From Neoechinorhynchus agilis (taxonomy: Eukaryota; Animalia; Acanthocephala): a DNA stretch of 64,000 bases. Below are positions 700-43,420 of this stretch, piece by piece (position 1 is the stretch's first letter; every line of letters starts with the position of its first letter). Below the pieces are notes generated by a model. That model was not told where the DNA came from. It worked only from the letters and a program-made list of their open reading frames with translations, and ran no database searches. The DNA lies in NCBI GenBank assembly GCA_051530055.1, contig CM121342.1, forward strand, positions 10,679,480 to 10,743,479. Direction: 5' to 3'. A program made the translations under genes and the position numbers.

Positions 700-3600
700 T
701 TTTAATCGATTATTTTGAGCGTAAATTTTTGCTATGAACAGTATTAAAAAATTAAATGTCCCAAGGCCTCACCGAAAAGTCACCATTTTTAGACTTCGAG
801 AGCAAAGCAGATTTTTCTTTAGGTTTAATTAATAAGATGATTTAATCGCAAAGAGAACCTTTGGGTACAGAAGATGCATAGGTACTGCCAATGGAGGTTC
901 TTCATCCTATTTGTTCAAGTTCGTCCAATTGAGTGTATTGTGGGCCTAGTGCGTTGAGTGTATCCAATCGAAGGGGGTCTTGCTCAAAGTCTCCAGGAAG
1001 GTGCTAACGAATTTGGGTCTTTGTTTAGGGGGACGTCCTCTTGAGTGGCTTGATTATCTAAACCTAAGTTACGTGCTCTAATTGCCTTCGCTTTAGCCGT
1101 TTTCAGTAGACGTTTGAACTTACTCACGTCAAATTCAATACTGAGATTACATGCAAAAGTGTAGCCAAGAATTGTTATTTCGAGTGAAATTTAGTGCCAA
1201 ATTCAGATGAAAAAAGCTGCTATAGAATTCCCGCTATCGACGTTTCCCAACAACCTACTTCGATTTGAGAATAAATTGTGTTTTTTGAGGGTTGAGGGTG
1301 AAACCCATTTGACGTAGAATAGGGTTGAGCCAGATAAATAATTCATGTAGTTTCTCTGGCCGATAGTTGGGTTCTTTTATTACAACCGTAATGTCATCGG
1401 CATAAACAGTGACGTCTTTACACACTTTACAGTTATGAAATATGAACTGTGAGGCTAAACAAAATAAGATCGGGGAAAGTGGTGACCCTTGTGGAACACC
1501 TCTCGTTTGAAAATAAATAGTACGAGAGAGATAGTCTTGGAAGAAGAATCGTTTTGAGCACAGAGAATTGTAGATTCTTAAAATAAGAATATATGGGAAG
1601 TGGAAGTATTTTAGAATGTGTGTAATGAATTCAATATTTATAAAATCTAATGCTTTAAAAATATCAAACGAAATCAAAATATTCATTAATTTCTAATAAT
1701 TATTAAAAATTTGACACAATCTCCGAAATTGCCGAGTGCACTGACCTATTCGATAAGAAACCATGACATCTCGGGTCTATGCAGTTATTGTCCAAAGCAA
1801 ATCGAAAAACTAGTTTGGCTAGGACGCGTTCATAGATCTAAACAAGAGAGTTCTGAATCGAAATGGGTCTAACGTCCCCTCCAGAGGCCACCTTCCTGCG
1901 CTTCTTCGTTAGGAAGATCCTTTTTACAAAATTGATTTCTGTCCACCTCCGGTGGAGCGTAAGTGAAGACCTGTGACATACCTGTTTAATTCTCTCGTGA
2001 AATCCAATTTATGGCCTTAAAACAGGCTGGCGATCCATTATTTGAGATTTTATCTTTTGAATTCCAATAGCTAACAATATGGAGAGATTTGCCCAGAATT
2101 CGGCATCAACAGGGTTGCCTTAACTCTTTGCTAACATAAGATTCCTTCCATATAAGCGGAGTAATCCAGGAGAATCGGAGTCAGTTCTCGTTCTTGCCAT
2201 CGATGTGAGAAAGTCACTACTTGATGTAATTAAAAATTGATTAATATCAGCGAGAGGCGAAGTATTTTGCGTAAAGAAAAACCTGAGCGCCATATTAAAT
2301 AATTGAACGTCAAGCAACCCCATTTTGAATTTTCTATTTAACAATTGGTTCCGTTCGAGATCGCAACCAATCATGTTCAGCTCGGCGGAAAAAGGCATTC
2401 TTAGTAATGGCTTAAGGTTTGAGTGGGCAACCTTTCCTCCACTGGCAGAGATCATAATATGAAGATTCCGAAGAAGATTGAAAGGTGGGAAAATCTTTGG
2501 ACAGGATTTCTAGTGAGTCGCAAGTTGAGGTCACTGCAGTTTGCCATTTTTGGGAGGAGTCACTGAAATCACCATAAATAAAATCTATTTCTGAATTAAG
2601 AATATTCTTTAGACAGTTTTTTATTTCTGTCAAATATATTTTCCGAGGTGGTCTGATATAGTCATTACAGGCGAGGTTTCCGTTGAATTTAAAGAAGATT
2701 CAGTATGAAAGATTGAGAGACAGATGGCGTTCAGAGATGTGGGAAATATGGATAGCAGTCCTTGAGAGGGATTCGAATAGGGTGGCGTAATAAAAGAAGA
2801 ATGATCTTTCAATAAAAACTGAATATTACCCCGGAAGGTTATTCGTAGACTAGAGATTTGGTCTCTTGGTTAAAGCAGATGTCAAAGCTGGTAATCTGAG
2901 AAATCAGGCGCCTAAACCCCACTGAGCCCCCTGCGTTCCATTGCACCAGCCTGAGACTCATTGCAATCTGCCCCTTTGGATGAGATTGTGAACACCTTCT
3001 ACGCAAATCTGCTTCTGTTCCTCAATCACTTGCTTTACATAAGCTTCTACATCGTTGGCTTTGAACGATTTGTTCTGAGGATCGTCCTCCAAGGAGGAGT
3101 GTTGATGATATCGTTTAGCTGGCGAAGATTTCGCATTAAGAGTCATGGAAAGCTTGCCTAGGATATAATATTTTCAATTGAACATTGCTTGGTGGTTTTC
3201 TCGGTCATAATGATGAGTGGTGGTCCTGAGCGCAAAAAGCATCGTCTTTTTTTTGAGGGACATTTTTGATCCGAGTGACCCAATTTTTAAGGTTAATGTT
3301 GCAACGTGGAAATACGTATTCGTCCTGCGCTGATATCTGATGAGCAAAAAATCGAAGTCCGTTGATTGGAAGAATTACGTAGATGTCGTCAAATCATATC
3401 GCGTATATGAATCGGAGCCTTAATGACGGCTCAAGGAATCGGTTTGCTCGTTTTGGTTGATTTTAGAAAGAATAAGATGGAACATCCGAACTTGTTCGAG
3501 AAATTGCGGCGATCCTCTGCGTCAATGTTTGGAGGTAAGTCGCCCGAAATGATAAATGTCGAGTAGAAACCTGAGTCCGACACTGTGAGATCCGGTTATC

Positions 3601-4091
3601 ACCAAATCGTATGATGAATTCTCTATAGTGTTGAAGGAATTCGTACGATACAAAGTTGATCTTCCTGAGGTTCCTCCGAAGTATTATATCGAGTGACTAC
3701 GATGACACTCGTCTTCAAGGGTATTGATCCACGGAGGAACATATAATTTGTGCATCCCATCCCTTGGATGGATGGATTTCGATTGCTGGGAAATCGTATA
3801 CGGCCATTTTCTAATTGGTTATTCAATGAATTGGTGACTGTTCCAGAGATGAAAATCCTCCTTTGTTTGTTGATGGTTTGTGCAAGAATCTTTGAAATCT
3901 ACACATAAGTTGGAGTTTGTGGGTTGCGTGTGAAATGCTTTTAGTTTAATTGACTTTATGATACGAATTTGCGCTTTGTAATTTTATTGATTTGATTGCA
4001 GTTTTTAAATGCGGCAAGGCGATTGCTTTGTTACAATTCCGAATTTGCGCAACACATAAAAAATGTATTGTTCATTGTTTTTAACTTATAA
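700..4091 (-). mobile_element. AT-rich LINE, family G, near full length and decayed (ORF1 zinc knuckles ~3150-3330, APE ~2400-2800, RT 1255-1900)
   Basis: RT motifs GVPQGSPLSPILF and VYADDI lie in ORF 1255-1686. Frameshifted CCHC-like residues lie upstream. The 5' end (ttaacttataa) is identical to the copy ending at 41354, with different flanks. Confidence 0.85.
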
Positions 4092-4129: not shown

Positions 4130-6474
4130 TAATTCTTTTTTCTTAAACCCTTAATACTTTCAATTTTTTTATTAAGATTAATGTCCTTGAAGTGCCGTAA
4201 ACATGAAATTGTTATAGGTCGACTTTATGAGCGTTAAAAGAAAAAACATGCAGTAGTTTAAAATGTAATCCTACGAAGGATATCACTAAACATTATGGGT
4301 TATGTTTTTTGGGTGAAAATGTTTCAAAAATCGGACAACCTAAAAATTAAGTTTGAGGCAAATCATTTAATTTTATCATTCATTATTACTGTTGGGTGAA
4401 ACGTCTGGGTGTCCGCACAAAACAAATTTAATTTTATGCATCATTAGAATACGAGCGACGTATTTCGACTTTCTCCGTTCGTGATTTACGTTGGCTTAAA
4501 ACAAGAACTTCAATTTTCCAGAACTTTTGAAAGATTGAAAAAGGTCTCCAAAGTTGTCCATTGGTTATTGTTTTTCCGGTAACAATTTGTTTTCTTGTCC
4601 ACAGACTCAAAGAGTTATATTGTATTTTTGATAAAACCAAAAGGATGCCTTGTTACCTTGAAACATATCATCTAACCAACACGAGTTTAGGAGTAAAGAC
4701 AAATTCTCCTGAACGATTTGTTAATGGAAGCTTTTTCCGCTATTTTATCGTTAGACCACTGACGGCTGTTGGTTGGATTTTCTAATTGTCGCTATGATTT
4801 TAATTATGATTCTTTTACACGCTAAACACGAAAATCGAATTCATCTTTATTTCGATAAAAATGTCTTGTTGCCATTCTACCCACTAACTAATGATTTTGG
4901 TTCCACTGAACTTCCAAGGGTATTTTTAACTTTTGCATACACTGGTTCAATTAATTCTTTATGTTTTTTGTTTGCCACATGATTAATCATCTTTTCTAAT
5001 ATTTCAATGATTTGTGACGCTTGAACTTCTTCAGCCGTTATTTCCTTTGCCATGATTTCCTGGAACATTCGACGAATCCAGTCTAGATTCCATATACTGT
5101 AATCCTTATGAAGTCCAATACGCAATCCTCTGCAATAAAAGGACAAATCGTGATTGATTGGTTTAAGCGATTCTTGGGTCCTTTCAGTGGCCTCCGAACT
5201 TTTCTCACTGTGCGATGATCCTGCACATTTAACAAGCTTCTTTTTTCTGGGAAATGATTTCCTGGCTTCACAATTAAAGACGTATTTCCGGCGCTTTGGG
5301 GCAGCTATAACGACTTCCTTCCGATCCAATGATTCAGACATTTTCGCTGATTTGTCGTTGACGCTTTCGGCAGCGCTAGGTTCTTCGCTCATTGGAAATG
5401 TGCGCTTTCTCTTCAGCGAGGCTTTCAACTCCTCAGAACTTTTTGCTGCGTCTAATCTTGCCTCTCGGATTGTTTCGCCGAATTTGTCGGCCAATTTCTG
5501 TATGAGGTATTTATACCGAATGTTTTTTGTATTATTGTTCATCTGCAACAACATCGGAACTACTCCTGAGCGCTGGATTTCCTCCGCGGAGAATTCTCCA
5601 TAGATCATTTCTCCAAATACTCGACATACCCAATCTCCGCTGATTATTGTAAAATTTTTGTCAATGCCGAAAGAGAGTTTATAGGCAATTTCTCCAAGCA
5701 TTCCATTCTGCGTCGACGTTTCTCCTCTTAAATTATCCTTTTTGATTTTTTCTTTCATTAATATTTTATCTTTATTGTTTACCGGCTTTCTGCTGATTTC
5801 AGCCGAGCCTTTAGAAATCTTTTCATCACCACCTTTAGCCTTTGAGTCAGCCTTTATTTGCCATTCACTGATGTTTGAGGATAATTGGACTTTAACTTCA
5901 TGACCCGTATCCTGTGCCGGACGTTTGATTTCTGTATTTTCGAATGATTGTGAATTTTTTCTTTTGCGGTTCGCTACATTTTTATCTTCGGTTGAAGCTT
6001 TCGTCATATCTGGAGCTGATTGAACATTCGGAGGTCGAGTTCTCGTTTCGTCTTCTTTGCCGATATTGGTTTCTTGAGCCTTGTTCATCGATATTACTTT
6101 TATGGGAGTGATATGATCTAAGTTTGCATCATTCACGTTGCGCTTTTGAGACGGGAAATCACATTGTGTTTGTGTTTTCTCAATAGTACATATTTACTTG
6201 ATTTTCCATGTTTATTGAATTGACAAATAATAGAAATACTAATTACAAAAATAATTTAAAGCTCAAGACGCTAAAAAACAATTCGAAACGTTTGCATAGA
6301 AAAAATAGATTCTTTATCACAATGTTATCCTGTGGACTAAATAAGCTCGGGCAACGGTTGCGCCTTTGTCCACTTGAGCACCATTTAAAGCGTACCACTG
6401 TTTTCCCAATGAAAATTTAAAATTAATTCTTGCTTTATTATTGAGTCCATCGGTTAAACTGAACGAAGCGATTA
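4130..6474 (-). repeat. Copy 1 of the repeat unit carrying the double-domain ORF
   Basis: Closely matches 30920-33100, 33875-36052 and (inverted, partial) 42655-43420. Confidence 0.9.
4877..6136 (-). CDS. Unknown basic protein (419 aa from GTG; ~403 aa from ATG at 6088) with two internal ~78-aa helical repeats resembling LEDGF-IBD/TFIIS-N fold
   Basis: Longest intact ORF of a 4-copy repeat unit. aa154-218 align ungapped to aa338-402 (about 23/65 identical by manual count). NLS-like RKRK, KRKR and KRRK motifs lie in disordered segments. An AATAAA follows the stop on the minus strand. Confidence 0.7.
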   Translation of the reverse strand: MNDANLDHITPIKVISMNKAQETNIGKEDETRTRPPNVQSAPDMTKASTEDKNVANRKRKNSQSFENTEIKRPAQDTGHEVKVQLSSNISEWQIKADSKAKGGDEKISKGSAEISRKPVNNKDKILMKEKIKKDNLRGETSTQNGMLGEIAYKLSFGIDKNFTIISGDWVCRVFGEMIYGEFSAEEIQRSGVVPMLLQMNNNTKNIRYKYLIQKLADKFGETIREARLDAAKSSEELKASLKRKRTFPMSEEPSAAESVNDKSAKMSESLDRKEVVIAAPKRRKYVFNCEARKSFPRKKKLVKCAGSSHSEKSSEATERTQESLKPINHDLSFYCRGLRIGLHKDYSIWNLDWIRRMFQEIMAKEITAEEVQASQIIEILEKMINHVANKKHKELIEPVYAKVKNTLGSSVEPKSLVSG

Positions 6475-9400
6475 TATATATAACGGCGTGTACAAAATGT
6501 TTCTCGATATATCCTAATTTTTATCCGAATTTCGGTTGCAAATGTTTTAGGTAGTTGTTTTTGTTTTTCCCTCTCTCCATCAGCTTTATGATCGATCTCA
6601 AGATCCAGCCACGTGTTAGAGAGTGAAGAACTAAAACCTTTTCATATAAGGACTCCATTTTTGTCGATTGATTATGAATGTGTCGTCAGGTTTTTAATAA
6701 TAAGCTTTTTCTATCCTTCTTTTTCATGTCTTTCATCGGTTCTTTTAACCAATTTGTTTCTTCAATCTTTAGACGTGACATTCCGTGTGTGTATTCAAAG
6801 TAGTAATTTCCTTGCTCTATTTGTATTCGTGCTTTTTTCTCGCTTCAAGTTGCGACATGCTTCATATATAAAACCTCTATCTATAGCATCAAACGCTCTG
6901 CTAATATCTAATTGTACTACTGCTTTGTGCACCTTTGAGTGAGTACTGTTCAATCTATGAAGTTCTATCGATAAAGTGTTCACGCTTTTGCCCTTTATAA
7001 AACCATGAAAGATATTTGGGATCTTTTTTTTTCGATAATAAATCCATAAGGTATTATTCAAGCACCTTTCCATAATAGAAATAACTGGGTTTTGAATTGC
7101 GATTAAACGCACCTCCGTTAGAGACATTATTCTGTTCTTATTTTTTGGAATTATCATCTTCTTCACTATGTTAAATTTCATTAGTTCAAAAAAGGACATG
7201 TCCTTATCCATTTTGGTCCAAAATAAAACTTTATTTCGTTCATCTAGCATATCCATTACCTTGGGAGAGACATCTTTTCCATTCATGGCCAAAGAGGAGT
7301 TGCCCTTCCAACTTTTAAGTACCTGTTCTATATTTATATCCCCGAAGGAACATTTTTCCTTCTCAGTCCATATGTATGGGTTTTTTTGCCCCCAATATAT
7401 GGTATAATAAAATCCGTTCTATTACATTAGTGTATGAAATTTCCCCTATCCGAGAGGCTGCTTTCATTTTCCAGTCAGTTCTCCTTTTCTTTAAAATTGT
7501 GTCCCAGAATTTTTTCTTCAGAATGCCTGAAAGTGATAGATTTAATCTATCTTTTTCTATACTCTCCTAATATAAATTTTTATAAAATTTCCCCATCCAG
7601 TACTGAGAACCCAGAGAATCTCCGTTGGCTTCGCAAATTCGTGCCATGCGGTAGTTCGCTGCATTTGGTCCAAAAGCACGATTACTCCTAACTGGCCTAA
7701 CAGTAATTTGTAATTTTTTTTTGCAGCAATCGATACCATGCTATTAAATGCCCCCATAGAAACCATACCTTTATCATTTAACAGAGATGATAGGGTTTCA
7801 TTAAAAAGCTTAATGGCCACAGGACTATAAAAATCGACTTTTGTTCTCAGTCCATAGGAACCTAGAATATATATTAGCATGTCATGGCCCATTTTTTTGT
7901 TATCAAAAAATTGTCCGGTAACATTTGCCACCAAGTTTAATTCCTTCCTGGAGAACATGAGGTCTAAATAAGAGTGAGAGTTTTTCGAGTGGAAGGTGGG
8001 TGAGCTCGACATATGAACGTTATAGTTCGAAGACCAGTGATTCAGTGCCACCGCCCCATTTGAGTTAAAGTCCCCTAGTATCAAGTCCGGTTTCCATTCT
8101 AGCAACCATTTCTCTACGTTTTTTTTGAAGAAAGATATTTTTTGGGAGCTATATATAAGTTGCCTACAATGAGACTAGCCAGATTAAATCCTTCTTCCTT
8201 TAAAAAATTACTTATCGAAATTATTTGGATTGCATAGTTTACGGTTTTGGATTGCACTAATAATTTTGGACAGAGGGACTTATGAACCGTTGTTTGTAAT
8301 CCTCCCGAGAAACCCATTTTATTATTAGGGCATTACCGTTATTTATAGGTGCTAATACTACAGTAATGTAATCCAAGTTTTCAATCAGGGATTGTTGTCC
8401 TGTCTCCTGCATACAAAATTTTTTCGTAGAGTCCCAATTTATCGCCTGTTTCAAGAAATTAGATAATGTTGAAATTTTCGAAACATTATATGTTATAATA
8501 TTAAAATTATGACTTAGGTAATTTATGGGCCTTATCATATTAAATTTTGTTTGATAATGAGGTTTTCCCCCTTTTACCTCCCGTGATTCCATTTCTATTT
8601 GATATTATGCTTCCTCCTCTGCTCTTTTTTGTAATTTGCTTTTCTGGTTGCGCCACCTTTCCACTGTTACCAGATGTAATTACTATTTCCTCTATGTCTG
8701 AACTTGATTCTGATGAAACTTCACTGCCCCCTCGCCCTCCGCAGTTGGGGCAACACTGTCTATTAATGCTACTACATTGTTCCTTACCGTGGTTTTCTGA
8801 GCAAAACACACATTTGATTTCGTTATTGCACTCCCAGGTTCTGTGCCCTTTTGGCATTGGGTTAGAATGAAATCATGTATTGATGTTTTATTTTGACTTG
8901 AAAATTCTATCCAGTAAGCCAAAAACGGAAAATTGCGTCCTTTAATTTTATTAATCGTGTCTTGGGTTCCCGCAACTAAAATCGCATATGGATCCATTGT
9001 TGGATTTTTTCTTAAATATTTAATTGGGTCAACGCCAAACACTTTTTTTATCTCCTGGAACTCTTCCTTACTGAGGTCTGGAGGTGGATTAAGCATAGGA
9101 ATAGTAGATCCCCGAGATATATCGTCAAATGTAATTTTCTTTTCCTCAAAAATTCCTTTAAAACTTTTTAAGCCATCCATTCCGAAGAAAAAAATCAAAA
9201 CTACCCATTTGGTGTTCACCACATTTTTAATTTGGAATACCAGCTGTTTCGTAAGCTTACTAGGTTCTAAGAACTTTTTATAAGATTCCTTTATTAGACA
9301 GTTTATCGTTAAATTTCCCAATCCTCTTTTAGTCTAGGCAATCTCTGGAATGCTGTTCCCATCCTCAAGTTACCCAAATCATGGTGGGGCCGAAAAACCA

Positions 9401-9827: not shown

Positions 9828-12800
9828 GACACACACAAACTGTGAATCATTTAGAACGAAAAAAAACCGTGCGCTATTTTTTGTTTAATTTTGCGCTCTG
9901 ATAAAATCAAAGAAACAGCCTAGTAAGCAGCCGATATCTTCTAGTATATTGGAAGATATGGCCACTACACTTTCCGGTTCAAGTTTTCCTCTGGTTTCGG
10001 ACGTAGTTATTTCCCACACGTGTGATTGTCAGGTTAGGATTTATTGTGCCCCAGTTTCTAACATTATTAAACGTCCAACCAAGAAGGATGATTTTGCTGT
10101 GAAGATCTCAAAGGAAGCTTTGGGTACCAGATCACCTGCTGAGCTTACACGAACCTATTTTTCACGTTATTTGGTCATTGGCGGCAAAGCGTCTCTTAGG
10201 CATTTCAACATCAAGAGGTTATTCGCTGCCAAGTTTCATATTATCTTCTGCTTTTTCAATGCGGAAGGGAGGGACTTATTTTTCAAAATGTTGACGGGCT
10301 TGGATATTACGTTTGTTTATCTTTCAAGAAGGGTGACCATTAGAATGTTTAATGCGCCTCAAGAACTGGATGCAGAAGGTTTTCGATTGGTAGAGAAGGA
10401 ATTAGGTGTGAAACCGATAAAATACCTATTCAGTCCAAATTCGGTTTCAGCATATTCACTTCTTTGTTCTGCCCCGGTGGAGACTGCAGACATATTGGCT
10501 TCCTCAGGTCGTGCTATCATGTCACACTGGGTGACCTTCTCCAGGTATCAGGAGTCAATTTACGACTTCAACCTGACTATATGCCAAAAATGCTCTGTAT
10601 GGGGACATACGGAATCAGGCTGCAAGTCTTCGCCGAGATGCATCTTTTGCGCTGGCTCCCACCATAAAAGGGACCGTAAGGCACAGGATAATCCTCTCTG
10701 CGCGAATTGTGGAAAGAGACACCCAGCCTTTGCTAGGAAGTGCAAGTCTCACACAATCCTTCATGGATACAGAGAATAGTAAGGGATGGGCTACTTACAA
10801 TCCTCATCCAGTTCACAGTGCTGACAACACTAAACAATCTGTTCGTAAGAAAGTGCAGCCTTGTATCTTGGAGGACATTTCACCCTTCCCTACTGACTCT
10901 ATTACTATATCCCACTCATCATCCCAAATGAGTTTAAACTTTGAAAACGAATTCTCTTAAAATCCATGCTTGCGTGGATTGTTGAGGGACTGACAAATCC
11001 GGATTTTGCTTCTCTTGCAAATGGACTATCCTTACAAGAAAATACCTCATTTAATAAAATTAGGGAAATGATTAATTTCTCTTCTACGAAAAGACAAATC
11101 TCACCATACTCTAGAGAATTGGACGAATCAAATCCAAAACGTAACAGATCTTAATATAACGGCAGAGCCTCTATGGACCCCTGACTCAAATTTTTCTTTT
11201 ATAACACATAATGCCTCTAGAGCATATAAACTTCCCACTCACCTTTCTGACTGTATAAACTCTTCTTATACGGATCTTCTCTTTTTTTCCAGAAACTGGT
11301 CCATTATCCAAACTATAAGTGCTTTCTCTTATCTCCACGTTTTACTAATCCCTCATCTAGTATAGGATTTTCCGGCGGACTTCAACTTTTTATCCTGGAT
11401 TAGTATGCCCCGAGCTGCTCTTTCAGGAGAAGAACGAGATCTTTGCGATCCAGATCGTGTCTATTAAAAACGCTCTATACGGCTCCTTCTCACCCTCTAA
11501 TCTCCATTTAACGATATGCAATCTCTATATTCAACCCAAGAAAGTTAACTCTTTTACCAAAATGTATATTAACTTCTTATTATTTTGAGATCCCGACTTT
11601 TTAGTTGGGGACTTCAATACTAATTTTTTCTCAGGCCTCAGACCGTTCTTTAAATCTCAAGACTTTTTATTACCTAAATTTCCATCTTTTCATAACTTTA
11701 GTTCAAACAGGCACTCCTTTTTGGATGGTGCAATTCTTAAAAAGAACTTTCCGTTACTCTTTTATCCCTCTCATTAATTACAGGTCCAGTATCTCCTGGG
11801 ACATGGTTTTATTTTATTTCAATCCAACGGACTCTCACTTAGAGATTTTATTATTTTAAATGACATATCCATACGAAATTTTAATAATGAACTTAGTTCC
11901 TTGTTCTCTAAAAGGAACTTGATTTCTTTTAGCATCTTTAACGACCTCATTTTACTTTCTGTAAAGAAACATCTTATCACTCAATCTTACATTAAGCGTC
12001 CTCCTGTATGTAGGACTGCAAATATTTTTTATAAAAAAGCAATCATTGCTAATCTTTTTAATAACAAAACTCTTCATGATTTCCTCATGAAGAAATTTTA
12101 CACTGAAAAATTCTTCTTTCAGATTGAACAGGAGACGAAAACCCTAGTGAATCTCAAACTTTTTGGCAAAGGTTTTTTGTCGACCATTTTAAACAAAAAA
12201 CCATCTTGTTGGAGAGCAAAGGCTGCCAATTGGATTGATTCAATTTCTTATCCCAAGGTGATTGAGGAAATTTTAAATGCGCATACATTCTCGGCTAACG
12301 CAGCCCCTCCTCTTCCCATTTTTAATAAAAAATTATTCTCTTGGAACTTAGAAATTAATTTTCTATTGGAATCGTGTAGATATCACGGTTCCGTGTCTAA
12401 TAATTCAATGAGCTGCTCCCCGAAAATCTTCGCTGCTATTAGCGAAGAGATTAAATGTTTATTCTTTTCAAAATTAAAATTTACAAAACTAGATTTTGAT
12501 GATCTTCTTCATATTAATATAGTGAAGAAAGTCTTTTTACCGAAAACCAAGGGTATTATTTCAAAACCGGCTCATATTAGAGTAATTTTAATTCAGAATC
12601 CTATAATCTCCTGCGTAGAAAGAGTTGTAAATTGACTTTTATACACGTTTTGGGAAACTAAGAAGCTTATTCCTTCTTACTTCCATGGTTTTATCAAAGG
12701 TAAAGGCGTTAACACCTTACTTGATTCCCTTAACTGTATGAACAATATTAAATTTGTTCAAAAAATTCTTATTCAGCTTGACCTGAACAAAGCATTTGAT

Positions 12801-13971
12801 GCTTTGGATAGAACCTTTTTATACAAAGCTCTTGAGGAGCTAAAAATTCCTCTGAATCTTATAAAAAAATCAATTACTTACTTGAATCAAAGTCCTTTTA
12901 TTATGAGGTGGATCCCTCAAAAACCAAATTCTTTTCCCGCTTGGGGGTCCCCCAAGGCTCTTTACTATCCCCTATTCTCTTCCTTATCTGCCTTATTTTT
13001 ATCTTTAAGAAATTGAAACTACCCAGGGGTATCTTTCCTCTTATATATGCAGACGATATCTTTCTCTTCTGCAAGGCCAGGTCTTGTCCCTCTCTTTTAT
13101 GCAACATTCAAGCAGCTCTGAGTACCCTTAGCTCAGAGTTGAAATTGGCTAATCTAGCCACCAATACGAATAAAACCTTTTTTATCCCCCTCACTAACTC
13201 GCTCTCTTCTTGGAAAGTTTTAATCAATAATTTAATTAAACACCACAATTTTAACTCCTCCAACATTAAGAAATTTACCAGGGTTCTAGGAATCGACTTC
13301 CCCTCCAAGACATTTAGATTTTAATTAATTCTTCGATTAATAATACCTTTCTAAAAATCAAATATGTTCTTAATAGAGCCAGATATCTTGATTTGAATTT
13401 TAACATTATATTAACCGTTCTAAAAACTCTCATTGGAGGATCCATCTGTTTTTTCGGGAGAGGTCGCCCTCCTGAACTTAGGTTTGCCTTCTTTTTTAGA
13501 TGTTTTAATAAGCTTCATAAACTTTTATCAAATTATAATCTTATCCATGAGCCTCTTTTATCTTTCCTCTCACGCTTATTTTTGGGAAAAATCTTATTCT
13601 TCCCTTCATTTTCTAATAAAGGTAAGTTCTTTATATCTAATGAACAGGTATTCTACTTTCCCTCTCCTTCTAAGCCTAACTTCAGCGCACAATGCTCCAA
13701 CACAATTCGATTGGAATTCAATGATGCACACACTTTTTTTACAATAAGTAATTTCTTAATGGATAAAGATAGGAAATGGTTAATGGCAAGAAAGTAATAC
13801 TACCAGGATAAAAGATTAATCTGGTCTTTTGGACCTCCGAGGTGGTCTGAGATCGACCTAATACCTGAGGTTCAACAGAGCAGACGAAGGACCAACGATA
13901 ACTTCTAGACTAACGAAAAATCCTAGTTGTTATCTTACTAGTTGTATGGCCGTGTTAAATAAATAAATAAA
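9828..13971 (+). mobile_element. AT-rich LINE, family B, full length (4.14 kb) with frameshifts
   Basis: ORF1 9949-10779 has three CCHC-type knuckles (CQKCSVWGH...CIFCAGSH...CANCGKRH). Decayed APE ~11160-11900. RT 11901-13797 (LDLNKAFD, GVPQGSLLSP, YADDI). (AAAT)n tail. TSD attaagtaaa 9818-9827 / atcaagtaaa 13972-13981. Confidence 0.9.
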
Positions 13972-14005: not shown

Positions 14006-16056
14006 CGCGAACAAGCGTTCGTTCATGCGCTCTAATATAGTTGGGAACAAAAATTGCGCTAAAGCGAAACCAAAGGAAAAGGTACCACCAGATCCTCCGG
14101 ATATTCGAGGGAGAATTATGATAAAGAACAACAACAAGGTTGATTTGTCTGCAAGTGAGAAGGGAGTTCTCGCCGGTAGGCTTCGGTTAAAGCCCGTGGC
14201 ACATCCCCGTTTAAAGCATTACATCGTGAACCCACTAGTCTTGATTTTTTGGTTCCATCCTCAGACTCTTCTCCCCCGCCCAACTGGGTGAGCAATTCTC
14301 CATCTTTCTTAAGAGAATCTCTCAGCCCTCAGAAGCTGGGTCACATTTCTCATGACGATTTGGTTCCTGGTCTTATCAAAGAAATTAACCAACTAAAAGA
14401 ACTAGTGAGCTCTGTTATCCAAATTATTAAAATAAATTTCCTGGCCATCCGAAATAAAAATGACAATTCGGTTTATACAATTAACGCAGCAATTAAAAGG
14501 TCACACTTCCCTCCTCTCAAGGAAACTGATTTAATAAGCAAGCGAGGGAGATCCTCATCGTTCTCCGAGTAAATGACTAGATCCCTGGATTCACCTTCTC
14601 AATCTATAATGCTTCTAGAGGTTCATACCACCCTTCTAAAATTTTTCAAATTGTATCAGATACTTTGGCAGATATATTATTTTTTCAAGAGTCGGGATTT
14701 CGTACTCTTGTTAATCTACAAATATATTAAGTTGTCGTGCTGAATCCCATGTCATCCTAGGGAAACTTGTTAATGGGCTTCTCCGGTGGTTTACAAATTT
14801 TTGTTAAAAAGTCCCTAAAACCTAAAATGCTATTTCAACTCAAGAATGATATATTTGCAATACAAAAAATTGCTATTAGGAACCCACTTTCCTCTATTAA
14901 TCCATCAACAGGCGAAATACTCACCATAGCAAATTTTTATGTCGTGCCTCGGAAAGCGAGCTGCTTTATAAAGAATTACATAAATATAATTACCTTATGG
15001 GACCCTGACATCATTTGTGGTGATTTTAACAGCAATGGCCTTTGTGCCTTTATTTCCTTTTTCAGGGAATATCGAGTGCTCCTCTCTGAGTATGCATCCT
15101 TTCATAATTATACTAAGAACCATCATTCCTTTTCGGAGGGAGCTTTTATCACAACATCGATTGGGTCTAATTCTTGTCCTATCATCCAAGCTCAATCTCA
15201 ACAATATTTAGGACATGATTTTATTCGACGTTGATCGAATTAAATCTAGAAGTCGTCTTGAGGCCAATACTCGATCCATTGAAGAATTTAATTCCCAAAT
15301 ATACTCGCTCTTATCATCTAACAACACTATTACTTTAACAAACTTAAATAATATAATTACTACCGCTATGAATACTCATCTCACTAAATATCGTTTTATT
15401 AAGACAAACTTTATGCGCTCCAGCAGCTTCCTGCTGCAGCGAATCAGCGCGGCGATCCAACACGGCAATGCCGCGGCCATCAAGGAAGCTGCCGAACAAT
15501 CATAACGTATGAGTGTGTAATGAATAATAATAATCTAAATAAGCAAATTTTTTTGATAAATATTCTATACTTGCCAATTTGAGAAATGATGTGACCCTCC
15601 AGAAGGATGCTATTTCCAAATTCTTTTCTACAGTGCATTATGATTCCCTCGCTCGGGATAAAAAGCGACTTTTATCAGTGTCAGCGTTCACTAAAGAATT
15701 TTGGAATAAAATTCTTAAACGGATATTTATTTCTTGGAAATATTTGGCTGTAAATTGGATTGGGACAATTTCTTACCCAGCAGTAGTCGAACAAATTCTT
15801 AATGCTCACACATTCTCCACTTTCCTGCACCCACCTTTGTCTACCTTCACTGATAAACATTTTAGTTGGTACTTCACTACTGCCGAGCTTTAAAAATTCT
15901 GGAAAATTAATCCCTCTAGGGCAAATAACTTTTCTTGTTTCTCCCTCTTAAGTTTTTCATTAGTCTCCGAAGGGAATAAGATCTGTTTCTCTGAAAATTT
16001 TTACGACAAAATCAATATAAATGACTTAATCGAGATGAATATTGTCAGGAAAATTA
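14006..16056 (+). mobile_element. AT-rich LINE, family C, 5' half with deleted ORF1 and no RT core
   Basis: APE motifs IANFYVVP and ICGDFNS (14767-15234). The linker is homologous to family B (AVNWIGTISYP vs AANWIDSISYP). It breaks off at 16056 into the PLE remnant through ttaac microhomology. Confidence 0.8.
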
Positions 16057-16248: not shown

Positions 16249-16249
16249 G

Positions 16250-30169: not shown

Positions 30170-31506
30170 TCACACATTTGTGTCATCAAATTCAATTTGC
30201 TTTCCACAGTTCCTAACATGATTGGCTATTGCCAGGGAAGCATCGTAACGCCTAAATGATTTTTGTGTTGTGCGATCCCTTTCTTTAGTCTTGGTTTGAT
30301 TTCTACCACAAATTTAGCTGAGCAGTCTTTGCAGTGGGCAGCGTATGTAACTTCATGCTTTTCACATTTTGACTTATTTTTAAGGATGCCTGCAAGGTTT
30401 TACCACCGTTTTGTAGTACACAAAATTATCGTCTTGTCGCAGGGAAGGCAAATCTCATTTAAGATCCGATGGGAACAAGTGAACGCCCGATAGTATTGCA
30501 GATTCCGAAGTGTAGGATTCAAAGTAAACGCCTGTTGATAAGGGTCTTAAACTTGGCTTGAAGGTCAAATGTTTTTTTCGGGTGAATATCTCGGAGTATT
30601 TCGATAATTTGTTTATTCCGACGAACCGTCCTCCAGTTCCTTAGGGGACTCTCTTATACTACAATTGATTGGCACAGAGCATAAAGGGGCTTTAGGGTGC
30701 ACGCATTGAACGCGAAATGCTGATTTAGCGAATGAATGTAAACGGGATTTCGTCGAGGGTCGTCGTAAACACACGTATCAAATCTCCAAGTTTCGCCACT
30801 ATCATGGGTTTCGCTGATCGAGGGATACGCCGGATTAAGCGAACGTTCCGTCCTATGAGGTTCCTTAGTGCAGTCAAATCTTAATTGACCGGAATGATTG
30901 TGGGTATAATATTTTCCGGGCAGCAGTAGTTTAAAATGTAATCCTACGAAGGATATCGCTGGATATTATGGGTTATGTTTTTTCGGTGAAAATGTTTCAA
31001 AAATCGGACAACCTAAAAATTAAGTTTGGGGCAAATAATTTAATTTTATGCATCATTAGAATACGAGCGACGTATTTCGACTTTCTCCGTCCGTGATTTA
31101 CGTTGGCTTAAAACAAGAACTTCAATTTTCCAGAACTTTTGAATGATTGAAAAAGGTCTCCAAAGTTGTCCATTGGTTATTGTTTTTCCGGTAGGACAAT
31201 TTGTTTTCTTGTCCTCAAAATTTTGGGAGCTAAGACTTAAAGAGTTATATTGTATTTTTGATAAAACCAAGAGGATGCCTTTTTACCTTGAAACATATCA
31301 TCTAACCAACACGAGTTTAGGAGTAACGACAAATTCTCCTGAACGATTTGTTAATGGAAGCTTTTTCCGCTATTTTATCGTTAGACCACTGACGGCTATT
31401 GGTTGGATTTTCTAATTGTCGCTATGATTTTAATTATGATTCTTTTACACGCTAAACACGAAAATCGAATTCATCTTTATTTCGATAAGAATGTCTTGTT
31501 GCCATT

Positions 31507-32718
31507 CTACCCACTAACTAAAGATTTTGGTTCCACTGAACTTCCAAGAGTATTTTTAACTTTTACATACACTGGTTCAATTAATTCTTTATGTTTTTTG
31601 TTTGCCACATGATTAATCATCTTTTCTAATATTTCAATGATTTGTGACGCTTGAACGTCTTCAGCTGTTATATCCTTTGCCATGATTTCCTGGAACATTC
31701 GACGAATCCAGTCTAGATTTCATATCCTGTAATCCTTATGAAGTCCAATACGCAATCCTCTGCAATAAAATGACAAATCATGATTAATTGGTTTAAGCGA
31801 TTCTTGGGTCCTTTCAATGGCCTCGGAACTTTTCTCACTGTGCGATGATCCTGCAGATTTAACAAGATTCTTTTTTCTGGGAAATAATTTCCTGGCTTTA
31901 CAATTAAAAACGTATTTCCGGCGCTTTGGGGCAGCTATAACGACTTCTTTCTGATCCAATGATTCAGACATTTTCGCTGATTTGTCGTCGACGCTTTGGG
32001 CAGCGCTAGGTTCTTCGCTCATTGGAAATGTGCGCTTTCTCTTCAGCGAGGCTTTTAACTCCTCAGAACTCTTTGCTGCGGCTAATCTTGCCTCTCGGAT
32101 TGTTTCGCCGAATTTGTCGGCCAATTTCTGCATGAGGTATTTATACCGAATGTTTTTTGTATTATTATTCATCTGCAACAACATCGGAACTACTCCTGAG
32201 CACTGGATCTCCTGCGCAGAGAATTCTCCATAGATCATTTCTCCAAATACTCGGCATACCCAATCTCCGCTGATTATTGTAAAATTTTTGTCAATGCCGA
32301 AAGAGAGTTTATAGGCAATTTCTCCAAGCATTCCATTTTGCGTCGTCGTTTCTCCTCTTAAATTATCCTTTTTGGTTTTTTCTTTCATCAATATTTTATC
32401 TTTATTGTTTACCGGCTTTCTGCTAATTTCAGCCGAGCCTTTAGAAATCTTTTCATCACCACCTTTAGCCTTGGAGTCAGCCCTTGTTTGCCATTCACTG
32501 ATGTTTGAGGATAATTGGACTTTAACTTCATGACCCGTATCCTGTGCCGGACGTTTGATTTCTGTATTTTCGAATGATTCTGAATTTTTTCTTTTGCGGT
32601 TCGCTACATTTTTATCTTCGGTTGAGGCTTTCGTCATATCTGAAGCTGATTGAAAATTCGCAGGTCGAGTTCTCGTTTCGTCTTCTTTGCCGATATTTGT
32701 TTCTTGAGCCTTGTTCAT
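31507..32718 (-). pseudogene. Copy 2 of double-domain ORF, one frameshift near 31720
   Basis: ORFs 31720-32718 and 31507-31698 together reproduce the 4877-6088 protein. Confidence 0.85.
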
Positions 32719-33094
32719 CGATATTACTTTTATAGGAGTGATATGATCTCAGTTTGCATCATTCACGTTGCGCTTTTGAGACGGGAAATAACATTGTGTT
32801 TGTGTTTTCTCAATAGTACATATTTACTTGATTTTCCATGTTTATTGAAGTGACAAATAATAGAAAAACTAATTACAAAAATAATTTAAAGCTCAAGACG
32901 GTAAAAAACAATTCCAAATGTTTGCATAGAAAAAATAGATTCTTTATCGCAGTGTTATCCTGTGGACTAAATAAGTTCGGGCAACGGTTGCGCCTTTGTC
33001 CACTTGAACCCATGGAAAGCGCTGCATTGTTTTTCCCAACGGAAATTTAAAACTAATTATGGCTTTATTATTCGGTCCATCGGTTTAACTGAAC

Positions 33095-33875
33095 AAGGCG
33101 ATTAAGTAAATGCAGTTGAACGCTTATCACACATTCGCGTCATCAAATTTAATTTGATTTCCACAGCTCCTAACATGATTGGCTATTGCTAGGGAAGCAC
33201 CGTAACGCCTAAATGTCTTTTGTGTTGTGCGATCCCTTTCTTTAGTCTTGGTTTGATTTCTACCACAAATTTAGCTGAGCTGTCTTTGCAGTGGGCCGCG
33301 TATGTAACTTCATGCTTTTCACATTTTGACTTATTTTTAAGGATGCCTGCAAGGTTTTACCACCGTTTTGTAGTACACAAAATTATCGTCTTGTCGCAGG
33401 GAAGGCAAATCTCATTTAAGATCCGATGGGAACAAGTGAAGGCCCGGTAGTATTGCAGATTCCGAAGTGTAGGATTCGAAGTAAACGCCTGTGGAGAAGG
33501 GTCGGAAACTTGACTTGAAGGTCAAATGTTTTTTTCGGGTGATTATCTCGGAGTATTTCGATAATTTGTTTATTCCGACGAACCGTCCTCCAGTTGCTAA
33601 GGGCTCTCAAATACTACAATTGATTGGCACAGAGCATAAAGGGGCTGTAGGGTGCACTCATGGAACGTGAAACGCTGATTTAGCGAATGAATGTAAAGGG
33701 GATTTCGTCGAGGGTCGTCGTAAACGCACGTATCAAATCTCCAAGTTTCGCCACTATCATGGGTTTCGCTGATCGAGGGATACGCCGGATTAAGCGAACG
33801 TTCCGTCCTATGAGGTTCCTTAGTGCAGTCAAATCTTCATTGGCCGGAATGATTGTGGGTATAATATTTTCCGGG
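33095..33875 (-). mobile_element. Degenerate Penelope-like RT thumb + GIY-YIG (also 30170-30920)
   Basis: Across frameshifts the minus strand gives FDTCVYDDPRRNPLYIH, RALSNWRTVRRNKQIIEILRDNHP, LAGILKNK, YAAHCKD.SAKFVVEIKPRLKKGIAQHK and AIANHVRSCGNQIKFDDANV, in the order expected for a PLE ORF. Confidence 0.7.
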
Positions 33876-34459
33876 CAGCAGTAGTTTAAAATGTAATCCT
33901 ACGAAAGATATCGCTGGATATTATGGGTTATGTTTTTTCGGTGAAAATGTTTCAAAAATCGGACAACCTAAAAATTATGTTTGGGGCAAATCATTTAATT
34001 TTATGCATCATTATAATACGAGCGACGTATTTCGACTTTCTCCGTCCGTGATTTACGTTGGCTTAAAACAAGAACTTCAATTTTCCAGAACTTTTGAAAG
34101 ATTGAAAAAGGTCTCCAAAGTTGTCCATTGGTTATTGTTTTTCCGGTAGGACAATTTGTTTTCTTGTCCTCAAAATTTTGGGAGCTTAGACTTAGAGTTA
34201 TATTGTATTTTTGATAAAACCAAAAGGATGCCTTGTTACCTTGAAACATATTATCTAACCAACACGAGTTTAGGAGTTAAGACAAATTCTCCTGAACGAT
34301 TTTTTAATGGAAGCTTTATCGGCTATTTTATCGTCCGATCACTGACGGCTATTGGTTGGATTTTCTAATTGTCGCTATGATTTTAATTATGATTCTTTAA
34401 CACTCTAAATACAAAAATCGAGTTCATCTTTATTTCGAAAAAAATGTCTTGTTGCCATT

Positions 34460-35671
34460 CTACCCACTAACTAATGATTTTGGTTCCACTGAACTTCCAA
34501 GGGTATTTTTAACTTTTGCATACACTGGTTCAATTAATTCTTTATGTTTTTTGTTTGCCACATGATTAATCATCTTTTCTAATATTTCAACGATTTGTGA
34601 CGCTTGAACTTCTTCAGCTGTTATTTCCTTTGTCATGATTTCCTGGAACATTCGACGAATCCAGTCTAGATTCCATATACTGTAATCCTTATGAAGTCCA
34701 ATACGCAATCCTCTGCAATAAAACGACAAATCATGATTAATTGGTTTAAGCGATTCTTGGGTCCTTTCAATGGCCTCCGAACTTTTCTCACTGTGCGATG
34801 ATCCTGCAAATTTAACAAGCTTCTTTTTTCTGGGAAATGATTTCCTGGCTTCACAATTAAAGACATATTTCCGGCGCTTTGGGGCAGGTATAACGACTTC
34901 CTTCTGATCCAATGATTCAGACATTTTCGCTGATTTGTCGTCGACGCTTTGGGCAGCGCTAGGTTCTTCGCTCATTGGAAATGTACGCTTTCTCTTCAGC
35001 GAGGCTTTCAACTCCTCAGAACTTTTTGCTGCGGCTAATCTTGCCTCTCGGATTGTTTCGCCGAATTTGTCGGCCAATTTCTGTATGAGGTATTTATACC
35101 GAATGTTTTTTGTATTATTGTTCATCTTCAACAACATCGGAACTATTCCTGAGCGCTGGATTTCCTCCGCGGAGAATTCTCCATAGATCATTTCTCCAAA
35201 TACTCGGCATACCCAATCTCCGCTGGTTATTGTAAAATCTTTGTCAATGCCGAAAGAGAGTTTATAGGCAATTTCTCCGGCATTCCATTTTGTCGACGTT
35301 TCTCCTCTAAATTATCTCGTTTGGTTTTTTCTTTCATCAATATTTATATTCTTTATTGTTTACCGGCTTTCTGCTAATTTCAGCCGAGCCTTTAGAAATC
35401 TTTTCATCACCACCTTTTGCCTTGGAGTCAGCCTTTGTTTGCCATTCACTGATGTTTGAGGATAATTGGACTTTAACTTCATGACCCGTATCCTGTGCCG
35501 GACGTTTGATTTCTGTATTTTCGAATGATTCTGAATTTTTTCTTGCGGTTCGGTTAAGTATTTTTTATCTTCGGTTGAGGCTTTCGTCATATCTGAAGCT
35601 GATTGAAAATTTCGTGGTCGAGTTCTCGTTTCGTCTTCTTTGCCGATATTTGTTTCTTGAGCCTTGTTCAT
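34460..35671 (-). pseudogene. Copy 3 of double-domain ORF, frameshifted in the N-terminal part
   Basis: ORFs 35360-35671 and 34460-35191 match the copy-1 protein. The C-terminal domain is intact. Confidence 0.85.
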
Positions 35672-36199
35672 CGATATTACTTTTATAGGAGTGATATGAT
35701 CTCAGTTTGCATCATTCACGTTGCGCTTTTGAGACGGGAAATAACATTGTGTTTGTGTTTTCTCAATAGTACATATTTACTTGATTTTCCATGTTTATTG
35801 AAGTGACAAATAATAGAAAAACTAATTACAAAAATAATTTAAAGCTCAAGACGGTAAAAAACAATTCCAAATGTTTGCATAGAAAAAATAGATTCTTTAT
35901 CGCAGTGTTATCCTGTGGACTAAATAAGTTCGGGCAACGGTTGCGCCTTTGTTCACTTGAAACCATGGAAAGCGCTCCATCGTTTTTCCCGACGGAAATT
36001 TAAAACTTATTATGGCTTTATTATTCGGTCCATCGGTTTAACTGAACAAGGCATTTGAGATAAGGTATTGAAGAAGGTATAGTTGACTAATCACGTTCCC
36101 AATATAGAGAATCTTTATTACGTACGCCACGCGATTCTATGCTAAAGGCTAAAATCATCTAAAAAATCCGTTGTTTAATTAACGGTTATTAAGTAATGA

Positions 36200-42655: not shown

Positions 42656-43420
42656 TGGCAAACAAAAAACATAAAGAATTAATTGAAATAGTGTATGCAA
42701 AAGTTAAAAATACCCTTGAAGTTCAGTGGAACCAAAATCATTAGTTAGTGGATAGAATGGCAACAATACATTTTTATCGAAATAAAGATGAACTCGATTT
42801 TTGTACTTAGAGTGTTAAAGAATCATAATTAAAATCATAGCGACAATTAGAAAATCCAACAAATAGCCGTCAGTGATCGAACGATAAAATAGCCGATAAA
42901 GTTTCCATTAACAAATCGTTCAGGAGAATTTATCTTTACTCCTAAACTCGTGTGGGTTAGATGATATGTTTCAAGGTAACAAGGCATCCTTTTGGTTTTA
43001 TTAAAAATACAATAAAACTCTTGGAGTCTTAGCTCCCAAAATGGTGAGGATAAGAAAACAAATTGTCCTACCGGAAAAACAATAACCAATGGACAACTTT
43101 CGAGAACTTTTTCAATCTTTCAAAAGTTCTGGAAAATAGAAGTTCTTGTTTTAAGCCAACGTAAATCACTGACGGAGAAAGTCGAAATACGTCGCTCGTA
43201 TTCTAATGATGCATAAAATTAAATGATTTGCCTCAAACTTAATTTTTAGGTTGTCCGATTTTTGAAATATTTTCACCGAAAAAACATAGCCCGTAATATC
43301 CAGTGATATCCTTCGTAGGATTACATTTTAAACTACTGCATGTTTTTTCTTTTAACGCTCATAAATTCGACCAATAACAATTTCGTGTTTAATCTTAATA
43401 AAAAATTGAAAGTATTCAGT
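42655..43420 (+). repeat. Partial copy 4 of the double-domain unit (last codons and downstream region)
   Basis: gcaaacaaaaaacataaagaattaattgaa...ccaaaatcattagttagtggatag plus the downstream flank shared with 4130-4870. Confidence 0.9.

Follow-up and report, generated by a model that had tools for sequence, protein, structure and literature searches.

We identified a gene in the acanthocephalan Neoechinorhynchus agilis whose product carries two divergent TFIIS N-terminal domains (TNDs), a known docking module of transcription factors. It lies in a stretch of 64,000 nucleotides of chromosome CM121342.1, hereafter called the window. The open reading frame (ORF) at positions 4877-6136 on the minus strand is a real N. 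agilis gene that has been locally multiplied. We consider it rather likely that this ORF is an intact two-TND member of a gene family specific to N. agilis, duplicated locally, whose product would serve in the nucleus as a bivalent reader of disordered TND-interacting motifs. Features of the gene, its copies and its surroundings are listed in Table 1.

Table 1. Coordinates of the gene, its copies and neighbouring elements in the window.
Feature	Coordinates	Strand	Remarks
Copy 1, intact CDS	4877..6088	-	403 aa; stop codon 4877-4879
N-terminal basic low-complexity region	5699..6088	-	predicted disordered; RKRK cluster
TND 1	5456..5698	-	aa 147-227 of the 419-aa ORF; five-helix TFIIS-N-type bundle
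Basic linker	5135..5455	-	KRKR, KRRK and RKKK clusters; least constrained part, pN/pS 0.78
TND 2	4904..5164	-	aa about 325-411; homologous to TND 1
Repeated DNA segment around copy 1	4147..6472	-	~385 bp 5' of the ATG, CDS and ~730 bp 3'
Copy 2, pseudogene	30923..33104	-	within 2937-bp tandem duplication block 30169-33099
Copy 3, pseudogene	33878..36052	-	within second tandem block 33126-36052
Fragment 4	42656..43419	+	CDS end and 3' untranslated part; inverted orientation
LINE piece	6490..9388	-	upstream of copy 1; ORF1-like, endonuclease-like, N-terminal part of RT
Repeat insertion	830..3946	+	downstream of copy 1; missing from paralogous locus L004

The ORF is uninterrupted and would encode 419 amino acids if counted from the GTG codon at 6136. 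The true start of copy 1 is probably the ATG at 6088, giving a product of 403 amino acids that begins MNKAQ, because the stretch upstream of this ATG contains a stop codon in four other aligned copies (copies 2 and 3, and both copies at the paralogous locus L001). The original prediction described a repeated gene, and a tblastn search of the window indeed recovered two further broken copies and a 3' fragment. Copy 2 matches the coding sequence at 31510-32766 with 94% identity and has one premature stop, created by the change of a tryptophan codon inside TND 2. Copy 3 matches at 34463-35719 and has an N-terminal region broken by two frameshifts; it is annotated as ACOME3_007127, in a gene model that includes an artificial intron. 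The coding part of fragment 4, found by tblastn at 42631-42752 on the plus strand, comprises the last ~40 codons. Of the three copies in the window, copy 1 alone is unbroken; among all six distinct copies four are intact, namely copy 1, ACOME3_007154, ACOME3_007244 and ACOME3_007246. The coding sequence is without introns in every copy. A 61-bp insertion at 4365-4425, inside the repeated segment, is present in copy 1 only.

The protein consists of two homologous domains set in basic sequence. Internal repeats at an offset of 184 residues had been proposed, and at this offset the two repeats share 25 of 78 residues in an ungapped alignment. Comparison of the two halves of the protein by BLASTP gives E=2e-15 with 33% identity, and the Smith-Waterman score of repeat 1 against repeat 2 is 118, where 2000 shuffles give 25.5 +/- 4.4 (z ~21). 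A profile built from paralogous domains alone, with no window sequence included, scores the two repeats almost equally, at 60.6 bits for residues 147-227 and 60.7 bits for residues 335-411. To judge from these sequence comparisons, both repeats of the ORF carry the same domain, with an extra 7 amino acids after helix 1 in TND 2. The linkers are, as described originally, basic, rich in NLS-like clusters (RKRK, KRKR, KRRK and RKKK) and apparently disordered. Lysine and arginine make up 21-23% of their residues, their pI is 9.6-9.8, and their pLDDT is low in a single-sequence model. The protein as a whole has a pI of 9.5 and four such basic clusters. A PWWP domain, said earlier to be lacking, was found by a Pfam scan neither in the ORF nor in the longer gene model P0002, and no other Pfam domain turned up in either, besides a weak HEAT-repeat match of the window ORF (E=0.05). 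Nor does the ORF represent a piece of some single-copy PWWP-IBD gene.

The nature of the repeated domain emerged from profiles and structure models of the domain. The entire protein gave no match to PDB sequences with phmmer, and a single-sequence AlphaFold model of the 403-residue product (pLDDT 45) was too poor for use. A profile of 15 domain instances (A4) matched the N-terminal domain of MED26 among PDB sequences (5odd and 6zv3; E=7e-7 and 9.5e-7), covering the whole domain. The same search placed the PPP1R10 TND at E=0.14 and returned no LEDGF chain at E<=10. Aligned by hhalign to MED26 residues 9-87, A4 gave a probability of 89.7% and E=1.9e-6. The domain of one paralogue also matched Pfam PF08711 with E=0.0096 and 16.2 bits, a score below the gathering score of 20.6 bits.

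An AlphaFold2 model of TND 1, computed with A4 as the alignment, reached a pLDDT of 97.3 and a pTM of 0.83 and consists of five helices (2-12, 22-34, 39-45, 47-55 and 58-96). The best Foldseek match of this model in the PDB is the MED26 TND (6zv3; TM 0.70/0.75, rmsd 1.8 A, probability 1.00), and the top 30 matches are nearly all IWS1/Spn1, PPP1R10, LEDGF IBD, TFIIS domain I, Elongin A and HRP2. A library of viral structures contained no meaningful match. The alignment-based model covers TND 1, and the assignment of TND 2 comes from the sequence profile and from its homology to TND 1. Judged by profile and model together, the repeats are divergent TNDs (PROSITE PS51319, Pfam PF08711) that are closest to MED26.

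The helical bundle of TFIIS-N or IBD type that had been proposed is thus the fold recovered by the MED26 profile match, the AlphaFold model and the Foldseek matches to TNDs. The more specific identification with the LEDGF IBD did not hold, as MED26 is nearest by both sequence and fold, and nothing marks the worm TNDs as an integrase-binding subtype. The register given originally for LEDGF, with ITAEEV over VTMQQA, nevertheless agrees on the position of the conserved threonine with the HMM alignment to MED26 (ITKEAL), through which it was judged.

The likeness to MED26 extends over ~79 aligned residues, with the same order of five helices, a conserved threonine that opens helix 3, and a hydrophobic pattern in common across helices 2-5. 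However, identity between the MED26 and worm domains is only ~18%, and MED26 combines one TND with middle and C-terminal Mediator-binding regions, whereas two TNDs are the only domains of the worm protein. The Pfam families Med26_M and Med26_C have no match in the ORF. An orthologue of MED26 was therefore rejected as an identification, given the two TNDs and the lack of MED26-specific Pfam families.

The integrase-binding domains (IBDs) of LEDGF/p75 and HRP2 belong to the same TND superfamily and match the model with TMq values of 0.48-0.64 in Foldseek; those of the LEDGF IBD (0.56-0.64) rank below MED26, IWS1 and PPP1R10. In contrast to the worm protein, which has neither a PWWP domain nor an AT-hook region, proteins of the LEDGF/HRP2 type combine an N-terminal PWWP domain with a single, C-terminal IBD. 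The worm domains are not known to share the integrase-contacting loops or the FxGF pocket of the IBD. The fold is also common to TFIIS, IWS1/Spn1, PPP1R10/PNUTS and Elongin A according to Foldseek. To our knowledge, TNDs are single docking modules within larger proteins, where they stand beside other functional domains. The worm family differs in having arrays of one to five TNDs, two in this ORF, with nothing but basic disordered linkers between them. A text search of the literature for tandem TNDs yielded no paper describing them.

Relatives of the protein were sought in an exhaustive HMMER search of 1.84 billion representative proteins. It recovered only P0001 and P0005-P0008, all from N. 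agilis. A plant LRR protein (P0009, E=4e-4) that also appeared in this search was judged from its sequence to be a false positive. When the domain alignment was used in a word-indexed homology search, one more protein appeared, the 155-residue fragment P0010. The related proteins contain one to five such domains each, and the same divergent TND is present in five or more further gene clusters of N. agilis. Several deeply diverged paralogue families keep the domain at 15-35% identity. Proteins of this family are recorded in the NCBI genome annotation only. As far as these searches indicate, the family is specific to Neoechinorhynchus agilis (Acanthocephala).

The gene models of the assembly come from an RNA-seq-guided pipeline (PMC12690905), which is not in itself proof of transcription, and the N. 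agilis transcriptome paper, in its text and one supplement, contains neither locus tags nor TND terms. Several gene models of the family are artefacts, in which introns were invented to skip frameshifts or in which the terminal part of a Piwi-like gene was fused on.

The copies have diverged under purifying selection, as far as their substitutions indicate. Pairwise dN/dS among them is 0.28-0.45, and pN/pS rises from 0.25-0.28 within the domains to 0.78 in the linker. Nonsynonymous and synonymous changes stand at 88:59 against a neutral expectation of 2.75-3.9:1, and variable sites are distributed over the three codon positions as 49/25/70 (p=2.6e-5). Neutral evolution, which was to be considered for an amplified ORF of this kind, does not fit these values, and the selection is strongest in the two TNDs. 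All 403 codons are open in the four intact copies, despite DNA divergence of up to 7%. Divergence is about equal in the ORF (3.5-7%) and in the untranslated flanks (2-10%), so constraint is visible only in the ratio of nonsynonymous to synonymous changes and in the codon-position pattern.

These values bear on the alternative that the ORF is a decaying, non-functional duplicate and that the frame of copy 1 is open merely through recent duplication. Two of the three copies in the window being broken would agree with such decay, as would the patchwork of repeats around them and an ORF that has diverged no less than its flanks. We nonetheless think decay unlikely. It would have to accommodate the low dN/dS together with the contrast between domains and linker, a nonsynonymous deficit and a third-position excess that are both significant, open frames in most of the distinct copies, and a domain retained in several deeply diverged paralogue families.

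The arrangement of the copies suggests how the gene was multiplied. All two-TND copies are located at 10.68-11.14 Mb, within ~0.45 Mb of CM121342.1. Copies 2 and 3 sit in one pair of 2937-bp tandem blocks, and copy 1 has 5' and 3' flanks in common with the loci L001 and L004 once inserted repeats are removed. At L004 the intact copy ACOME3_007154 is flanked by an innexin gene and a WD40/CAF1C gene. In the assembly as it stands, L001 and L005 form a 14.7-kb inverted duplication with 100% identity. Flanks both upstream and downstream are common to the copies pairwise, the pattern of tandem and segmental duplication. To judge from this arrangement, local duplication of both kinds multiplied the two-TND gene within this part of the chromosome, and LINE elements entered the region afterwards. 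The 5' edge of the repeated segment is sharp, reads A|TC in all contexts, and is identical to the nucleotide in three flanking contexts; such an identical edge is not predicted by plain segmental duplication. At the 3' side the ends differ between copies and mark no true terminus, and copy 1 continues in line with L004 past the point where the segment seems to stop.

The surroundings are rich in retroelements, as first described, with LINE fragments that have Pfam matches to RVT_1 and Exo_endo_phos. The whole region is a patchwork of repeats, and bases 1634-4091 are found again at 38960-41354, immediately downstream of the RT ORF at 37660-38940. The LINE piece upstream of copy 1, whose endonuclease-like stretch is without a Pfam match, is missing from L001 and does not belong to the gene. 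To judge from their absence at paralogous loci, the LINE pieces beside copy 1 are insertions.

LINE machinery abundant nearby could also have spread the gene itself, in which case the copies would be processed retrocopies of one parent mRNA. Every copy has an intronless coding sequence, the sharp 5' edge common to all copies resembles a transcription start, and an AATAAA, which in copy 1 precedes an A-rich stretch, lies ~20 nt before the point at which fragment 4 diverges. Copy 1 and L004, however, remain collinear well beyond that point, and flanks on both sides are held in common pairwise. The copies are moreover clustered rather than dispersed and have neither a clean poly(A) tract nor a target-site duplication. 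We regard retrocopying as very unlikely. Intronless, locally amplified copies of a TND gene exist in primates as ELOA2/ELOA3. They offer a precedent for a TND gene that turns intronless and multiplies in a local cluster; they retain the full Elongin A architecture, however, and show no sign of a common origin with the worm gene.

The original prediction went further and took the gene for mobile-element cargo, an IBD-only protein that could serve as a tether or a decoy for integrases, transposases or elongation factors. Such a role might help or counter retroelements. We find the cargo reading highly improbable, even though the TND superfamily includes the LEDGF IBD, whose chains are among the Foldseek matches, three copies lie within LINE-rich DNA, and the 5' edge recurs in three flanking contexts. 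A 2431-bp segment with a five-TND paralogue gene is in addition 99.96% identical on two chromosomes, between unrelated flanks. Against the cargo reading, the LINE pieces that adjoin copy 1 are missing at L001 or L004, no enzyme gene is constantly linked to the copies, one copy lies between host genes (innexin and WD40), and the nearest relative is MED26 and not LEDGF. Nor do the clustering of the two-TND copies and their pairwise common flanks speak for a mobile carrier. When the repeated segment and its edges were searched for TIRs and LTRs, nothing emerged except short repeats attributable to chance and the 61-bp local insertion in copy 1, and neither target-site duplications nor poly(A) were seen at the copy edges. 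There was no Rfam match at gathering thresholds in the whole window, and hence no hammerhead ribozyme of the type of Penelope-like elements, and no integrase among 20 window ORFs scanned against Pfam. Helitron-like ends (5' TC, and 3' CTRR with a hairpin) were considered and rejected, as no 3' end matches and the collinearity of copy 1 with L004 extends further than the apparent end. Tethering of an integrase or transposase by this protein is pure speculation.

For the locally duplicated, intact two-TND gene that we favour, a function is suggested by TNDs of known role. TNDs are docking platforms for disordered TND-interacting motifs, which they bind by a surface that combines a basic patch with two shallow hydrophobic pockets (PMC9987994). 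By analogy with the TNDs of TFIIS, MED26, IWS1, PPP1R10, Elongin A and LEDGF (PMC9987994), the worm protein would be nuclear, and each TND would dock a short disordered motif of another transcription or elongation factor. With one motif docked by each TND, the two-TND protein could form a bivalent bridge between such factors or a competitor (sponge) for them.

A more far-reaching reading would treat acanthocephalan 'TND-array' proteins, with two to five TNDs on a basic disordered string and no further domain, as multivalent motif hubs or sponges whose amplification and near-identical five-TND copies reflect an ongoing conflict. We hold this to be decidedly unlikely. Under such a reading the conflict may involve motif-mimicking retroelement proteins, or it may lie in a germline-specific rewiring of transcription elongation.

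A family made of tandem TNDs only would lend itself naturally to the multivalent reading of TND-interacting motifs, and could show effects of valency on the assembly of elongation complexes. For acanthocephalan biology it represents a lineage-specific, amplified and probably nuclear family in a parasite whose gene set is reduced, and the "hypothetical proteins" of this family in GCA_051530055.1 can now be named. The domains also provide divergent TND scaffolds for the comparison of binding specificity. Residue conservation among them peaks in helices 3-4 and at a lysine of helix 5, a pattern that would be compatible with a conserved surface. This near-invariant lysine aligns at or beside the conserved Trp/Phe of canonical TNDs, and the surface of the worm domain may be altered accordingly.

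Both internal repeats of the two-domain ORF are divergent TFIIS N-terminal domains (TNDs), and this is evident from sequence profile and fold matches alike. When a profile of 15 domain instances was compared with all PDB chain sequences, all four best matches were to MED26, a Mediator subunit, in its N-terminal domain; the entries holding this domain alone, 5odd and 6zv3, gave E-values of 7e-7 and 9.5e-7. Profile positions 3–81 align to MED26 residues 9–87, with a probability of 89.7% and E=1.9e-6 against this segment (hhalign), and the PPP1R10 TND follows after MED26 at E=0.14. Among the paralogous domains, one matches the TFIIS helical bundle-like family of Pfam (PF08711) under the gathering score, with E=0.0096. 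Repeat 1 is predicted as five helices (mean pLDDT 97.3, pTM 0.83; AlphaFold2 with the same alignment), and the top PDB match of this model in Foldseek is the MED26 TND 6zv3 (TM 0.70/0.75, rmsd 1.8 Å, probability 1.00). IWS1/Spn1, the PPP1R10 TND, the LEDGF IBD, TFIIS domain I and the Elongin A TND come next, yeast and human 'LW' domains and the HRP2 IBD stand further down, and nearly all of the top 30 belong to this single superfamily. A viral structure library yielded no match for the domain model.

The original prediction, made from raw sequence, proposed a fold of the LEDGF IBD / TFIIS-N type. The fold turned out right at the superfamily level, as the MED26, IWS1 and LEDGF IBD matches show, but the LEDGF subtype did not stand, since MED26 is closest. 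The register against LEDGF given there agrees with the HMM alignment to MED26, and the Pfam scan of the protein confirmed the absence of a PWWP domain. The same scan found no other Pfam domain and none of the C-terminal regions of MED26, in which the worm protein differs from its nearest TND subtype.

The ORF is present at 4877–6136 on the minus strand as first described, its start having been counted from a GTG. The first ATG lies downstream, at 6088, and the product is most likely a protein of 403 amino acids with the N-terminus MNKAQETN, because the stretch from GTG to ATG contains a stop codon in four other aligned copies (copies 2 and 3 of the window, and both copies at L001, another locus on CM121342.1). 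The proposed internal repeat is borne out by four measures: in BLASTP the halves of the ORF match over 84 columns at 33% identity (E=2e-15); 25 of 78 positions are identical at the ungapped 184-aa offset originally given; the Smith-Waterman alignment scores 118, where shuffled sequences score 25.5 ± 4.4; and a profile made only from other proteins' domains scores aa 147–227 and aa 335–411 equally, at ~60.6 bits. The segments preceding and separating the repeats are basic, as had been noted, with 21–23% K+R and NLS-like RKRK, KRKR, KRRK and RKKK clusters, and many of their residues are small or polar.

Across 5.8 billion proteins, a word-indexed search returned nothing beyond near-identical copies of the two-TND gene. 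Run exhaustively against 1.84 billion representative proteins, a HMMER profile of the two repeats recovered five real clusters, all N. agilis "hypothetical proteins": the two-TND gene itself (P0001) and proteins with five domains (P0005, 678 aa), three (P0006), four (P0007), and one preceded by long tandem repeats (P0008). A plant LRR protein also recovered is regarded as a false positive. The 15 domains align almost without gaps across ~86 residues, and conservation is strongest over helices 3–4 (T..EI..SGL...L..M..N) and, within helix 5, at a Lys. The fold is well known and the domain a new, divergent version of it; the arrays form a locally amplified, lineage-specific family. We know of no described protein made up of an array of TNDs, one to five in number (the ORF at 4877–6136 has two), without any other domain, and no paper on tandem or multiple TNDs came up in a text search of the literature.

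Two of these relatives have questionable gene models. At L007:1-2185 (JBMGUZ010000028.1; P0006 / ACOME3_010599), an Argonaute/Piwi-like last exon (...SIPAPCYYAHHVAFRARHY...) is joined to the three-TND gene by a predicted intron. This join is probably an artefact of annotation, because the Piwi-like frame ends at its own stop ~60 codons further on; the two are same-strand neighbours and their adjacency is real. An ORF at 28509–29045 (+) of the window lies inside a repeat also found in L001, and an overlapping frame of the same DNA, 28670–29041, resembles the first ~70 residues of P0007, which suggests that the P0007 model probably begins within a repeat.

The gene is repeated in the window, as had been noted: besides copy 1 (the ORF at 4877–6136), tblastn with the protein detects two full-length copies and a fragment (see table), and the three window copies have ~2.05–2.3 kb of DNA in common at 94–95% identity. 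The public model of copy 3 (P0004 / ACOME3_007127) appears to bypass both frameshifts via invented introns, and that of another copy, P0002 (ACOME3_007244), appears to gain a 90-aa N-terminal extension from upstream DNA; these models are not evidence for intact genes.

Features of the window
Feature	Position	Strand	Remarks
Copy 2	31510-32766		94% identity; one Trp codon changed to stop, within second repeat; tblastn
Copy 3	34463-35719		two frameshifts, N-terminal part; tblastn
3' fragment	42631-42752	+	tblastn
RVT_1	6795-7292
RVT_1	12908-13324
RVT_1	21397-22863
RVT_1	25688-26374
RVT_1	37660-38940
Exo_endo_phos	26762-27445
Exo_endo_phos	46403-46960
FOXP coiled-coil	49066-49662
NAC domain	55524-56051
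NEDD4/Bsd2 family	57838-58593	-
ATG4-type peptidase C54	61504-62172 and 62169-62684		split across two ORFs

Selection was assessed over six distinct copies (three in the window, two at L001 and one at L004, a further locus on the contig), four of which keep all 403 codons open. Pairwise dN/dS is 0.28–0.45, which argues against neutral evolution, and pooled pN/pS rises from 0.25–0.28 for the two TNDs to 0.48 for the N-terminal region and 0.78 for the linker. The six copies show 88 nonsynonymous versus 59 synonymous changes, where 2.75–3.9 to 1 is expected under neutrality, and variable sites per codon position number 49/25/70 (chi-square p=2.6e-5). This pattern points to a protein-coding gene under moderate constraint concentrated on the folded domains, although total divergence of the ORF is not below that of the untranslated flanks and two window copies are dead.

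The surroundings are indeed a retroelement nest, of LINEs with RVT_1 and Exo_endo_phos matches. LINE ORF1-like frames occur at 9949–10779 (+), 8692–9321 (-) and 27761–28159 (-), of which the first and last contain clustered zinc-knuckle-like Cys/His motifs. No frame has a Pfam match at E<=0.01, and the frames come from several different non-LTR elements, most of them truncated.

In sequence comparisons, the two-TND gene does not behave like part of an element; the pattern is one of local duplication, both tandem and segmental, with LINEs inserted afterwards. Copies 2 and 3 arose by simple tandem duplication of a 2937-bp block, and all two-TND copies lie within 10.68–11.14 Mb of one 16.4-Mb chromosome. 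Flanks are common to pairs of copies: the upstream flank of copy 1 to L001 once a LINE piece (6490–9388) and the stretch 10838–12730 are removed, its downstream flank to L004 and L001 once a repeat insertion (830–3946) is removed, and ~0.9 kb of upstream DNA to copy 3 and the second L001 copy. Copy 1 and L004 stay collinear past the apparent 3' end, where L004 has a 440-bp insertion.

However, plain segmental duplication does not explain everything. The 5' edge of the common segment (AATCGCCTTGTTCAG..., AATCGCC..., window 6472) falls on one and the same nucleotide in three upstream contexts that differ (6472, 33104 and 36052), and the tandem-block junction recurs at 16054–16252 as the block tail, 22 bp and only the first 19 bp of the segment. 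Moreover, a 2431-bp segment holding the five-TND paralogue is 99.96% identical between L002:9872-12302 (CM121341.1) and L003:9872-12302 (CM121343.1). The flanks are unrelated, and neither poly(A) nor a TIR or target-site duplication was seen; L003 has a second, inverted copy ~10 kb away. Mobility of some form, or gene conversion, may thus have played a part. Nothing connects this to a retroelement or integrase, and the suggested role as an integrase decoy is without support. Carriage as mobile-element cargo is equally unsupported: no terminal inverted or long direct repeats were found around the gene, an Rfam search of the window gave no match, copies have common flanks, and the intact copy ACOME3_007154 has an innexin gene on one side and a WD40/CAF1C gene on the other.

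Two TND bundles, strung along a basic and probably disordered chain, make up the protein. TNDs lack catalytic activity; their ligands are TND-interacting motifs, short disordered stretches of other transcription factors, which they contact through a basic patch and two pockets, one formed by helices 3–5 and a further shallow one (PMC9987994). The conserved helices 3–4 and helix-5 Lys are compatible with a putative conserved binding face. The worm protein would enter the nucleus and could dock two such motifs simultaneously, so that it might bridge factors or compete with single-TND factors for motifs.

Elsewhere on CM121342.1, two 14.7-kb stretches with two TND-gene copies in each (L001:4001-18693 and L005:1-14693) are 100.000% identical, in opposite orientation and ~12 kb apart (11.095–11.110 and 11.122–11.136 Mb); the explanation is either an assembly artefact or a palindromic duplication of very recent date. 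Exons of ordinary host genes lie in the right-hand part of the window, 49066–62684.
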